In this document: positions 32,557 to 34,880 of the stretch, in pieces | Numbering within the stretch: position 1 is the first letter of the stretch | Layout: every line of letters starts with the position of its first letter | Assembly: GCA_037379345.1 (NCBI GenBank) | Contig: CM074511.1 | Location: 28,278,862 to 28,342,861 of the forward strand | Source: Perna viridis | Taxonomy: Eukaryota | Reading direction: 5' to 3' | Length of the DNA: 64,000 bases | Notes under the pieces: model-generated | Databases searched by the model: none | Told to the model about the DNA's origin: nothing | The model's input: the letters and a program-made list of their open reading frames with translations, nothing else | Program-made: the position numbers and the translations under genes

Positions 32557-33142
32557 TTACTATTTTTTTCCTGAATACTTCTGTTTCATAGACAAATGGA
32601 ATGTGTGATCTTTATACAATCGAACGGACGAAATTTTATTGATACGTAAACTATTCCTCTATTCGGAAGAACCTCTCCAAAACAGCATTCAGATACCTCC
32701 TTTCTTGTTGGTGTTGCCTCTTTGCCGAATCTTAGACTGTGCACAAATTTCACGAGTGTCGTTATATACGTTTGCATGGCCGATAAAAAAGTAACATTTA
32801 AGTTATTTTTGTGATTTCGAATTTCTCATCCAAACGAAAGTTTGAAACTGCCTATATATATATTTATTTATTTATTATTCATATTTGGGATCGACTACGT
32901 ATTCTTTTGTTCGGATATCTCTTGTCTCCCTCTTCTGTTGAATATTATACGTGTTTTTACATCTTGCATTTAATATACTTTAGCAAAATATACAGTTCAG
33001 ATGTCGATTGTGTCGTGCGCGTGTATTAAAATGGTCTTTCAAGTCCATATATTATTGGATGTATACAAACGTTCATCACTAAAAATTTCCATTGGTACAA
33101 TCAAGCGGCTCGTTGGTCTAGGGGTATGATTCTCGCTTTGGG

Positions 33143-34759
33143 AGCATCAGATTTTTTGGCACCCAAGATGTCAGACGTGTTTTGTTACAGTGTTCTTAAT
33201 GTTTGTGGAATTAGTTAGATTATCAGTTTTGGAATGGATTTTCCAACCGAAATATAGTGATATGATGGATGATGGGCATAGTTACACAAGTAGTAAGTTT
33301 CAGTTGACAAAATACGTATTTATATACAATTGACATTATCGTGATAGCTTCTGCCGTTTTTGATTTGAGGGTCTTGTGGAAAATTTATTTATGAATTCAA
33401 TGTTGAGAGATTAATTTATGTGAAAATGGATTGTCTACCGAAAACATTAACTTCTTTGTTGAAAATTGTAAATGAACAATATACTGATTTTAGCTGGACA
33501 TGTACTGAGCAAAATGGAAGAATGAAAATATCTTTATTGTGGACAAATGGTGATAAATCAACGAAACGGAAATCTAATGCATCTAGAAAACGTGACCGGA
33601 AACGACTGAAGCAATTTGTAGAAAAGAAAAATTCAGAAAATAAAACATCTGAAAGCGAAGATGAATCGTTTATTGAAAGTGATACAGAAAGTGATATTCC
33701 ATCTGAACCCACCGATGCGTTAATGGACGTGATCGACAGTGTTCCGTGTAGCGCCTCATTGACGGTAAATACTAACAAAGGAAAGCAGTCAAGTGAAGAG
33801 AATAACCAATTGCGAACCGAGAGTGTGAAACATGTTAACGGAAATTTAAATGCCGCAGGGAAAATATGTATAAGTGAACATTCGAATACACAGAATATGT
33901 TAACTAAATCTCATGACGTTGTGAATACAGAAAATATTTCGAACACTGAAGAGAAATCAAAATCTCGACAGACACCAGTTCTAGATAAAATTGTTATCAA
34001 AACTTCGTTGAGTATGTGTAGCGCAACACTATTAACGTTGATCCCAATGATTAATTTAATCATGTCCTACTCATTGGGAAAGGAAGAGGACATTCATTAT
34101 TTCGGTCCAGGAACAAAGCGGTACACGTACGCTTTGCACAATATTGAAAACGATTTTGATGATGTTAGGAAAACTAAATACATGAATAGTGATATAGCTA
34201 GTGCAATTGAGAAAATGGAAATTGTTGCCCGCAGGAAAATAGAGACATGGTTAAACTAGGTCTGATTTGATTTTTAAAATGTATGATAAAGTTTGAATGT
34301 ATGGAAAATGTTTTGAAATATTTTTTTTTTACATTTTTTGCATGCCAATGTTTTAAAGCAGTCTGGAATGGATAGCCAGCCGGAATCTTTAATATTTGGA
34401 TATGAAATTGTGTAATGTATTTCAATTACCTTTTCACTTGTTTTCACATTTTACCTAAAATTAAAAAAAAAAAATAAAATAAAAATGTGCATGAATACAG
34501 TGAAAGTGTACAACTGTGATATCGCTTGTGCGTACATGATTGTGAATAAAAATATATTAAATGTATGAATATAAAAATTTTGTAGGTATTGCGAAAATGG
34601 ACAATTGTGGTGACTTTGTTTTCTATGCGTATGTAATTGACATATATGATATAACTAATCAATATGATAATAGTATGTCTATGAGAATATTAATAACAAT
34701 ATCTCTTTGATTTGTAAATGTTTTTCTGTTAATAAAATTTTATCAAGATAAAAAAAAAA
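33143..34759 (+). mobile_element. 1,617-bp non-autonomous protein-coding retroposon, copy 1
   Basis: 15-bp TSD, AATAAA and A10 tail, single ORF without RT/EN motifs, 3' end shared with Tx1-B. Confidence 0.9.
33426..34259 (+). CDS. Orphan 277-aa protein of the 1.6-kb element (ORF track opens at GTG 33420)
   Basis: 834-nt open frame in very AT-rich DNA; basic NLS-like KRKSNASRKRDRKRLK followed by an acidic tract. Confidence 0.8.
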   Translation: MDCLPKTLTSLLKIVNEQYTDFSWTCTEQNGRMKISLLWTNGDKSTKRKSNASRKRDRKRLKQFVEKKNSENKTSESEDESFIESDTESDIPSEPTDALMDVIDSVPCSASLTVNTNKGKQSSEENNQLRTESVKHVNGNLNAAGKICISEHSNTQNMLTKSHDVVNTENISNTEEKSKSRQTPVLDKIVIKTSLSMCSATLLTLIPMINLIMSYSLGKEEDIHYFGPGTKRYTYALHNIENDFDDVRKTKYMNSDIASAIEKMEIVARRKIETWLN

Positions 34760-34880
34760 GATTCTCGCTTTGGGTGCGAGAGGTCCCGGGTTCGAATCCC
34801 GGACGAGCCCGTACTTTTTACCGTTTGAAAGCGCTGTTTATGGACCCATAAGTATTTATAATCCCGTAAATCGGGTAACT

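Follow-up and report, generated by a model that had tools for sequence, protein, structure and literature searches.

A 1.6-kb polyadenylated retroposon from the mussel Perna viridis lacks a reverse transcriptase but carries its own conserved orphan gene, is inserted at nucleotide 21/22 of many different tRNA genes, and most likely gets there by borrowing an L1/Tx1-type LINE that uses the same site. We refer to its family as F1. The element was examined in a window of 64,000 nucleotides (the whole stretch of DNA analysed), and the family was then followed through the genome and in other species.

Anatomy of the insert

The original prediction described a 1,617-bp insert that splits a tRNA-Pro(UGG) gene, with a 15-bp TSD, a poly(A) end, a single 277-aa ORF and no RT, endonuclease, transposase, TIR or LTR, and this description was confirmed in every respect. 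The left and right copies of the TSD occupy 33128-33142 and 34760-34774, and were recovered again in the search for terminal repeats, which found no TIR or LTR. The ORF runs from the ATG at 33426 to the stop at 34259, leaving a 5' UTR of 283 nt and a 3' UTR of 490 nt. The protein contains no Pfam domain, and no BLASTP or profile similarity to the LINE ORF1 or ORF2 proteins was detected. The 3' junction of the element (G22) lies 1 nt from that of both LINEs in the window, whose flanks start at T21 (61164 and 31911). The features of the window are as follows.

33107-33142 (+), 5' part of the split tRNA-Pro(UGG) gene (tRNA nt 1-36); the last 15 nt (33128-33142, tRNA nt 22-36) are the left TSD
33143-34759 (+), F1 retroposon, copy 1 (1,617 bp), in the same orientation as the tRNA
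33143-33158 (+), atypical 16-nt head that replaces the canonical 5' end of the family; it resembles a tRNA-Lys(UUU) anticodon-arm piece
33159-33179 (+), 5' UTR core conserved across families, ending in a DPE-like heptamer (33173-33179) about 28 nt from the canonical 5' end; the DPE reading is inferred from the published consensus
33426-34259 (+), ORF for the 277-aa orphan protein: N domain (1-75), disordered acidic/Ser linker, C domain (185-277)
34514-34522 (+), 9-nt 3' UTR box shared with the LINE 3' UTR and with sister and foreign families
34711-34757 (+), 3' terminal 47 nt, 87% identical to the 3' terminus of LINE-C, including AATAAA at 34731-34736
34750-34759 (+), poly(A) tail, A10
34760-34810 (+), 3' part of the split tRNA-Pro(UGG) gene (nt 22-72); the first 15 nt are the right TSD
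36537-38153 (+), F1 copy 2, array-unit duplicate of copy 1 (same TSD, same head)
39931-41544 (+), F1 copy 3, array-unit duplicate; the downstream tRNA half is mostly deleted
55319-61163 (+), LINE-C, the proposed helper: ORF1 at 55579-57123 (CCHC knuckles), ORF2 at 57126-61028 (APE endonuclease, RT, zf-RVT); inserted in a tRNA-Pro gene with its 3' flank starting at nt 21
61117-61163 (+), LINE-C 3' terminus matching the F1 tail; the 9-nt box lies at 61075-61083
25872-31910 (+), LINE-A coding region and 3' end (ORF2 44% aa identical to that of LINE-C); same tRNA-Pro site; its tail resembles those of the sister families F2 and F3

The three copies in the window (33143, 36537 and 39931) are 99.8-100% identical, share the same TSD and the same odd 5' head, and are spaced exactly 3,394 bp apart. 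They are therefore one insertion, amplified with the array unit. A search for the progenitor of the 16-nt head showed that only these three copies carry it.

Family and INDEPENDENCE

To establish whether the insert belongs to a mobile family, we searched the genome for further copies and examined their flanks. More than 40 scored copies at 96-100% identity were found on 9 contigs, and the 5' motif of the family occurred 58 times, against 0 times in the control, indicating a family with about 60 5' ends. The flanks of 30 loci revealed insertions in Pro(UGG/AGG), Leu(UAA/CAG), Ser, Gly, Phe, Thr, Lys, Glu, Ile and Arg tRNA genes and in a tRNA-like repeat. The TSDs are 8-61 bp long and always start at tRNA nt 21/22, while one case has a target deletion instead. 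From the distinct combinations of host tRNA and TSD we count at least 16 independent insertions in at least 11 tRNA types. The target consensus is the D-loop GG, then T, T/A, A, and then the nick. The target is thus not tRNA-Pro, as originally proposed, but nucleotide 21/22 of essentially any tRNA gene.

The element has the hallmarks of a LINE-mobilised (TPRT) retroposon: a 3' poly(A) or LINE-like tail, TSDs of variable length, variable or extra 5' nucleotides, and no TIR or LTR. It does not qualify as a SINE, since it is 1.6 kb long, encodes 277 aa, contains internal T runs and an AATAAA signal, and gave no RNA-family hit inside the element. An Rfam scan of the element and its flanks returned only sub-threshold hits, all in the tRNA 3' half, with no ribozyme or RNA head. 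It is not an internally deleted LINE either, because only the last ~47 nt match and the 5' UTR is unrelated to those of the LINEs.

A conserved orphan gene

The ORF is intact in about 35 copies. Two sister families in the same genome, F2 and F3 (about 33-36% aa identity to F1), are also single-ORF inserts in tRNA arrays. Between F2 and F3 dN/dS is 0.18-0.21 at a dS of about 1, indicating purifying selection. Variation within the family shows no codon-position bias, a neutral and uninformative pattern, so that selection is visible only between families. In addition, 62 homologous protein clusters exist elsewhere, all 250-325 aa or fragments, some of them annotated as uncharacterised proteins in Mytilus edulis and M. 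galloprovincialis. Foreign contigs show the same tRNA site, 5' motif and tail.

The predicted structure has confident N and C domains (pLDDT above 90), while a first prediction with 6 sequences reached a pLDDT of only 40 and was discarded. No usable fold match was found with Foldseek against PDB (best E 0.28), with a wide VIA-align search (best Z 4.7, covering only the C domain) or in BFVD, although these searches barely tested the N domain. The weak PUR-repeat matches (Z 3.9) are not evidence. A PDB sequence profile search and ESM Atlas returned no hit, and no Pfam family was detected in 26 members, so the function of the protein has no support from homology or fold. As for expression, a search of sequencing runs and read placement with the element alone, without its tRNA flanks, gave fragments only, in runs whose RNA status is a guess, and we do not count this as expression.

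Relationship to the resident LINEs

The only non-self match of the element in the window is to the last 47 nt of LINE-C (87%, E=2e-10), and no other nucleotide similarity to the LINEs was found. The LINE-C tail has 253 candidate genomic copies, and all 20 of those retrieved sit in different tRNA genes at the same position. The 9-nt box occurs 4 times in 64 kb, all in F1 or LINE-C 3' UTRs, against 0.7 expected, and it recurs in F2, F3 and three foreign families. However, the shared tail is short and AT-rich and includes the poly(A) signal, and single-sequence folding revealed no conserved 3' stem-loop shared by the elements and the LINEs. Moreover, as two LINE families use the same site, the assignment to LINE-C rather than LINE-A rests on the tail alone.

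The LINEs had been assigned to the Tx1 clade in the original prediction. LINE-C has the expected APE endonuclease, RT, C-terminal zinc motif, ORF1 with CCHC knuckles and target-specific insertion. The closest solved protein to ORF2 is human L1 ORF2p (4e-81), and its best endonuclease match is the L1/Tx1 loop chimera. This evidence comes from domain content and best matches rather than from an RT phylogeny; the LINE is referred to here as L1/Tx1-group.

The 277-aa protein does not appear to derive from these LINEs. BLASTP against the resident ORF1 proteins gave nothing, hhalign gave a probability of 0.1%, and a profile search of the whole genome found only stand-alone copies. Two M. edulis relatives have a TSD and poly(A) at non-tRNA sites, which suggests that the helper probably sets the target, although this rests on two loci only.

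A proposed model of a satellite retroposon

We consider it likely that F1 is a non-autonomous, Pol II-type, polyadenylated retroposon family mobilised in trans by a LINE. In this model, the mRNA would be made from an internal downstream-type promoter in the conserved 5' UTR and translated into the 277-aa protein, which most likely coats or marks its own RNA, standing in for an ORF1 protein. The ORF2 protein of a co-resident L1/Tx1-group LINE, LINE-C in the window, would nick the bottom strand of tRNA genes just after the D-loop GG, at nt 21/22, and reverse-transcribe the F1 RNA there, recognising it through a mimicked 3' end made up of a shared ~25-47-nt terminus and the 9-nt box. The helper would therefore set the target, while the satellite keeps its own gene, promoter and 5' end. 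Our analysis shows the anatomy, the copy number, the independent insertions at one tRNA position, the conservation of and selection on the protein, the shared tail and target, and the lack of homology to ORF1, whereas mobilisation by LINE-C, for which there is no experimental or read evidence, the promoter type, expression and the function of the protein are inferences.

The original interpretation, a site-specific satellite retroposon in tRNA-Pro genes that carries an unrelated gene and borrows Tx1 machinery, is thus partly supported: a multi-copy TPRT-type element without RT or endonuclease, with a conserved ORF unrelated to the LINE ORF1 and a 3' terminus and target matching an abundant LINE, is borne out by several independent lines, but the restriction to tRNA-Pro is not, and the Tx1 assignment rests on domain content and best matches only. 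A new element class cannot be claimed either, since the searches did not extend to Repbase or Dfam and protein-coding non-autonomous LINE partners already exist as a kind (HeT-A, HAL1). Full-text searches of the open literature found no description of this element or of an intra-tRNA L1/Tx1 LINE.

Among alternative explanations, the one that deserves most attention, although we regard it as unlikely, is that F1 is an ORF1-only remnant, of the HAL1 or HeT-A type, of a LINE lineage whose ORF1 was of this unclassified kind, the autonomous parent being extinct or absent from this genome and the element now using other LINEs. Many LINE ORF1 proteins are fast-evolving and unclassifiable, the layout of a small structured domain, a basic stretch and a phospho-acidic linker is compatible with an RNA-binding Gag-like protein, and the element has a LINE-like internal 5' promoter region and full-length insertions. 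On the other hand, the whole-genome profile search found only stand-alone ORFs of 260-300 aa, none followed by an RT, all 62 foreign clusters are stand-alone in size, and neither the protein nor the 5' UTR resembles its counterpart in the resident LINEs. Homology to an unknown ORF1 type cannot be excluded.

Two further readings seem very unlikely. A retrocopied host gene that landed once in a tRNA array and was multiplied only by array duplication would fit the window copies, several runs on two contigs (C5 and C2) that are clearly array-unit duplicates, and the neutral-looking variation within the family. It is contradicted by the at least 16 insertions with different tRNA hosts and TSD lengths on 9 contigs, by the absence of any intron-containing parent in the genome, the presence of which, without other independent insertions, had been named beforehand as a refutation of the original prediction, and by three diverged families and foreign relatives that share the same ends and the same site. 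A domesticated host gene family merely residing in tRNA clusters, with the poly(A) and TSD being historical, would agree with the Mytilus annotations and the purifying selection between families, but the copies are near-identical and numerous, each carries its own TSD and poly(A), copy number and location vary between arrays, and the ends are conserved as well as the ORF.

Comparison with known elements

HeT-A, the Drosophila telomeric retroposon, and HAL1 (half-L1) are also non-autonomous poly(A) retroposons that encode one protein and depend on the reverse transcriptase of another element, and HeT-A is also target-specific. Their protein is a recognisable ORF1/Gag homologue of the helper's clade, whereas the F1 protein shows no sequence, profile or fold relation to the helper's ORF1 or to any known family in our searches. 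In the SINEU/Tx1-Mar pair of crocodilians (PMC4494074), a non-autonomous retroposon inherits the target preference of a Tx1-group LINE, a partnership likewise inferred from shared target and ends, but SINEU is short and non-coding with an snRNA head, while F1 is built like a Pol II mRNA. Dewa and other target-specific Tx1-clade LINEs (Kojima and Fujiwara 2004, as cited in PMC3706591) are L1/Tx1-group APE-type LINEs living in multicopy small-RNA gene arrays; Dewa is described as targeting the spacer of tRNA-Leu arrays (PMC3706591), whereas the LINEs and F1 examined here insert inside the tRNA body of many tRNA species. Dada DNA transposons (PMC3706591, PMC8869645) do insert at a fixed position inside tRNA genes, tolerated because the genes are multicopy, but they encode a DDE transposase, have 6-7-bp TSDs, and each family targets one tRNA type. 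SVA and R2-derived SIDE elements are non-SINE, non-autonomous elements mobilised in trans by a LINE, but are non-coding composites or internal-deletion derivatives of the helper, with which F1 shares only its last ~47 nt.

It is tempting to speculate that these elements form an old, widespread bivalve lineage of "hyperparasitic" retroposons, each keeping its own orphan RNP-type gene, downstream-element promoter and conserved 5' end, and changing LINE helper by copying the helper's 3' terminus. Each would so inherit the helper's target, nt 21/22 of any tRNA gene in this genome and other sites in M. edulis, and recognition of one structural position shared by all tRNA genes would itself be a new kind of LINE target specificity. 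This broader reading is not excluded by the evidence, but remains tentative.

Non-autonomous LINE partners are normally non-coding (SINEs, SVA) or keep a piece of the LINE itself (HAL1, HeT-A). Here an unrelated gene has been maintained under purifying selection across deeply diverged families and across mussel genera, which implies that the protein contributes to the satellite's own spread, and offers a natural system for asking what, beyond a 3' tail, an RNA needs in order to capture a LINE's ORF2 protein. The site shared with the helper, one fixed nucleotide position in essentially every tRNA gene, is also unusual: reviews of Pol III-gene targeting list only elements that insert beside tRNA genes (PMC5911963). 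It could show how an APE-type LINE reads a structural feature of a gene class, which bears on the engineering of site-specific retroelement insertion. On the practical side, these ORFs are currently annotated as ordinary uncharacterised host proteins in Mytilus assemblies.

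The insert and its copies in the array

The window is a long tandem array of tRNA-Pro(UGG), tRNA-Pro(AGG) and tRNA-Val(CAC) genes, with 68 intact genes in all, interrupted by a few large inserts. One of these splits a tRNA-Pro(UGG) gene and is organized as follows:

33107-33142, tRNA-Pro(UGG) nt 1-36, upstream of the insert
33143-34759, the 1,617-bp insert
33426-34259, ORF of 277 codons in a good start context, with a 283-nt leader and a 490-nt trailer
34731-34736, AATAAA, followed by 13 further nt and A10 at the end of the insert
34760-34810, tRNA-Pro(UGG) nt 22-72, downstream of the insert

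The tRNA nt 22-36 are duplicated as a perfect 15-bp target site duplication (TSD). No terminal inverted or long terminal repeats were found, and no Pfam domain. Every element of the observation in the original prediction, which described a poly(A)-tailed single-ORF insert in a tRNA-Pro gene, was thus confirmed.

A self-comparison of the window revealed three copies, at 33143, 36537 and 39931, which are 99.8-100% identical, spaced exactly 3,394 bp apart, and share the same TSD and the same 5' head. They are therefore one insertion, multiplied by duplication of the array unit. The third copy has lost most of the downstream tRNA half.

Insertion at one position of many tRNA genes

To find out whether the insert belongs to a family, which we call F1, we searched the 723-Mb assembly. 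More than 40 scored copies at 96-100% identity were found on nine contigs, and a 28-nt 5' motif occurred 58 times, against 0 for the reversed control. We then reoriented 30 loci, rebuilt the empty sites and examined them with ARAGORN. The insertions lie in Pro(UGG), Pro(AGG), Leu(UAA), Leu(CAG), Ser(CGA), Gly(UCC), Phe(GAA), Thr(AGU), Lys(CUU), Glu(CUC), Ile(AAU) and Arg(CCU) genes, and in a tRNA-like repeat, all in the orientation of the tRNA. By contrast with the original prediction, which placed the element in tRNA-Pro genes, the target is a position in tRNA genes in general. In every determinable case the TSD begins at tRNA nt 21 or 22, the one-nucleotide ambiguity coming from A21 next to the poly(A), and its end ranges from nt 28 to nt 81, most often in the anticodon loop. 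One Pro(AGG) insertion has an 8-nt target deletion instead of a TSD. Counting distinct combinations of host tRNA, TSD length and 5' extra nucleotides gives at least 16 separate events. The aligned targets share little beyond the D-loop GG followed by T, T/A, A and then the nick, which is the 3' edge of box A. Nearly all copies are full length, and begin with a canonical 12-nt end preceded by 0-4 extra nucleotides.

At four loci (L017, L020, L022 and L030, on contig C2 at 52.23-52.37 Mb), F1 is inserted in a repeat that ARAGORN does not call a tRNA. The repeat has a D-loop-like GGGGAAA|G site and a T-arm-like box, suggesting that the helper needs only box-A/box-B-like features. On the same contig, at 52,200,000-52,331,000, about 17 or more tandemly amplified F1 fragments keep only the 5' UTR and codons 1-68, at recurring spacings of about 1.18 and 2.56 kb, indicating that a truncated copy has been amplified as part of a local repeat unit.

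LINEs at the same site as putative helpers

The window holds two LINEs with an APE endonuclease and a reverse transcriptase (RT) in the same array:

55319-61163, LINE-C, with a 514-aa ORF1 carrying CCHC knuckles and a 1,300-aa ORF2 carrying an Exo_endo_phos endonuclease, RVT_1 and zf-RVT
25872-30658, ORFs of LINE-A, whose tail ends at 31910

The two ORF2 proteins are 44% identical. Both LINEs have their 3' junction at T21 of a tRNA-Pro gene, one nucleotide from the F1 junction. Among solved structures, LINE-C ORF2 is closest to human LINE-1 ORF2p (4e-81), and its best isolated endonuclease match is the L1 endonuclease carrying the Tx1 loop. Its closest named relatives are unnamed Mytilus coruscus and M. 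edulis proteins at 60-69% identity. On the basis of such matches, rather than of a clade phylogeny, we take the host to be a mytilid-like bivalve and the LINEs to be L1/Tx1-group.

The flanks of both LINEs are irregular. At LINE-C (55279-55330 and 61164-61190) the upstream tRNA piece reads as the UGG type, while the locus spacer and the downstream half are the AGG type, and the apparent TSD therefore differs at the first anticodon base. This fits a 5' end carried over from a previous UGG site, or gene conversion. For LINE-A (24200-24260 and 31903-31960), the 5' flank is a tRNA-Val gene broken in the T arm, while the 3' flank is tRNA-Pro(AGG) from nt 21, and the insertion spans a deletion or recombination of the array.

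Three observations tie F1 to LINE-C. The only non-self match of the element anywhere in the window is the last 47 nt of LINE-C (87%, E about 2e-10), including an 18-nt identical run that ends 2 nt before the poly(A). The LINE-C tail is also abundant, with 253 first-look candidates, many of them 100% identical, in two subfamilies whose final hexamers differ from that of F1 by one or two bases. All 20 copies that we retrieved lie in different tRNA genes (Ser, Arg, Leu, Met-like, Phe, Thr, Asp, Val, Ala and others), with the flank starting at the same tRNA position. Finally, a 9-nt box occurs four times in the 64-kb window, three times in the F1 trailers and once in the LINE-C trailer, always on the sense strand, against 0.7 expected. 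The same box, or eight of its nine bases in LINE-A, sits 35-80 nt before the poly(A) in LINE-A, in two sister families of F1 (F2 and F3, see below) and in four foreign elements. F1 and LINE-C further share a perfect 12-nt AT palindrome (34733-34744 and 61139-61150) that overlaps the poly(A) signal just before the tail. It could form a terminal hairpin or a dimer contact, but is too AT-rich to judge. Apart from this, F1 shares nothing with the LINEs, and its 5' UTR is unrelated to theirs, so it is not an internal-deletion derivative.

Conservation of the encoded gene

A six-frame search showed the ORF to be intact in about 35 copies. The same search revealed the sister families, with products of 262-272 aa (F2) and 283 aa (F3), which are about 33-36% identical to F1 and about 65% identical to each other. 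Each is a 1.4-1.5-kb single-ORF poly(A) insert in a tRNA array (Phe, Cys/Thr, Ala/Arg, Leu, and an unusual 92-nt tRNA-like gene), with a TSD starting at the same tRNA position. At locus L033 (contig C13, 21,084,500-21,094,499), 92-nt tRNA-like genes that ARAGORN cannot assign, probably intron-containing Met-type genes, form a tandem array with a 580-bp period, which hosts F3 and LINE-C insertions. Between F2 and F3, dN = 0.20 and dS = 1.05, so omega is about 0.2, whereas comparisons with F1 are saturated, with omega 0.2-0.5. Within F1, variation is spread evenly over UTRs and codon positions, as expected for decay after insertion.

A profile search of 1.8 billion representative proteins returned 62 clusters, all of 250-325 aa or fragments. 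Most come from about 1.5-kb contigs of marine, invertebrate-gut or fish metagenomes, and a few are annotated as "unnamed" or "uncharacterized" protein in Mytilus edulis and M. galloprovincialis. A 501-aa M. galloprovincialis protein annotated as "zinc finger protein GLIS1/3" (P0196) clusters at 90% identity with a 277-aa family member, and is probably a gene model that has absorbed an element copy. Three longer foreign contigs show the same anatomy: the insert lies in tRNA-Gln, tRNA-Ala, tRNA-Phe and a Leu-like gene at the same position, with the same kind of tail and a related 5' end. In a TARA metagenome scaffold (L042, positions 60-100 and 1706-1760), the 5' flank of the element is a Tyr-like tRNA piece but the 3' flank is tRNA-Ala, which is either a carried-over 5' flank, as in the window copies, or an assembly chimera. 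By contrast, two M. edulis loci have clean TSDs (17 and 13 bp) and poly(A) at sites that are not tRNA genes. This is consistent with a target dictated by the helper, albeit in a sample of two.

Predicted structure of the orphan protein

With 26 homologues, the AlphaFold model is confident for two domains. Residues 1-75 are predicted to form a helix, a beta hairpin and a long basic helix with an invariant K-S...R-D..R motif (pLDDT mostly above 90, with a dip around residues 41-50), and residues 185-277 four strands and two helices (pLDDT above 90). The two are joined by a disordered acidic, serine-rich linker. None of our searches found a relative. No Pfam family matched any of the 26 members, a PDB sequence profile search gave nothing, and Foldseek against PDB and BFVD gave nothing below E 0.01. 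An independent structural scan peaked at Z 4.7, on the C domain only. BLASTP and hhalign against the resident LINE ORF1 proteins gave nothing, with a probability of 0.1%, and a profile search of the whole genome found no copy attached to an RT. We therefore call it an orphan family. Its role can be inferred only from its layout and from analogy with ORF1 proteins: it may bind its own RNA in cis, help nuclear import through the basic stretch, and stand in for ORF1.

The 5' end and a putative promoter

The leader is conserved at nucleotide level between families whose proteins are only 25-35% identical, especially in the first ~35 nt and at a mid-leader GTAAGT. An upstream ATG in the conserved 5' core and this 5' splice-site-like motif (33165-33215 and 33295-33310) are conserved across families, and may be a uORF or a U1-binding signal. 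About 28 nt downstream of the canonical first A lies a heptamer that fits the extended DPE consensus of insect LINE promoters, and variants of it keep that spacing in F2, F3 and foreign members. A downstream element that fixes the start site would let full-length copies carry their promoter with them. It would also explain the odd head of the window copies, whose first 16 nt replace the canonical end and look like tRNA-Lys(UUU) nt 22-35 plus two bases, as would be carried by a transcript from a 5'-truncated master sitting in a tRNA-Lys gene. No such master exists in this assembly, so this remains a hypothesis. As for expression, Logan unitigs of 1,584-1,607 nt span the element almost exactly, end to end, but a repeat gives the same in DNA assemblies, and four runs guessed to be RNA hold fragments at low depth. 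We do not count this as evidence of transcription.

Relation to known elements

Target-specific Tx1-group LINEs and their non-coding satellites are known, as in the pair SINEU and Tx1-Mar (PMC4494074). The zebrafish tRNA-associated Tx1 element Dewa is described as targeting the spacer of tRNA-Leu arrays (PMC3706591), and reviews of Pol III-gene targeting list only elements that insert beside tRNA genes (PMC5911963). Insertion inside tRNA genes is known for Dada DNA transposons (PMC3706591, PMC8869645). Protein-coding non-autonomous partners also exist, namely HeT-A and HAL1, but their protein is an ORF1/Gag homologue. F1 can be described as a LINE-dependent retroposon, while it lacks the defining features of SINEs, of ORF1-only LINEs, of deletion derivatives and of processed pseudogenes. 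There is a real chance that it is already catalogued in Repbase under a generic name.

The interpretation in the original prediction, that of a satellite retroposon borrowing the Tx1 machinery inside tRNA-Pro genes, was partly supported. The finding is real but considerably broader than was thought: an old, multi-family, protein-coding satellite of tRNA-position-specific LINEs. The anatomy, the separate insertions at one tRNA position, the conservation of the gene, and the tail and target shared with the LINE were all established here. The mobilization mechanism is well supported by this anatomy but is itself inferred, as are the promoter and the role of the protein.

A further insert in the array

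Another of the large inserts, of ~11.8 kb, lies at 41694-53519. It contains a gag-like ORF (PF03732), a 1,340-aa pol-size ORF and a Baculo_F envelope-like ORF, and is an LTR/errantivirus-like element.
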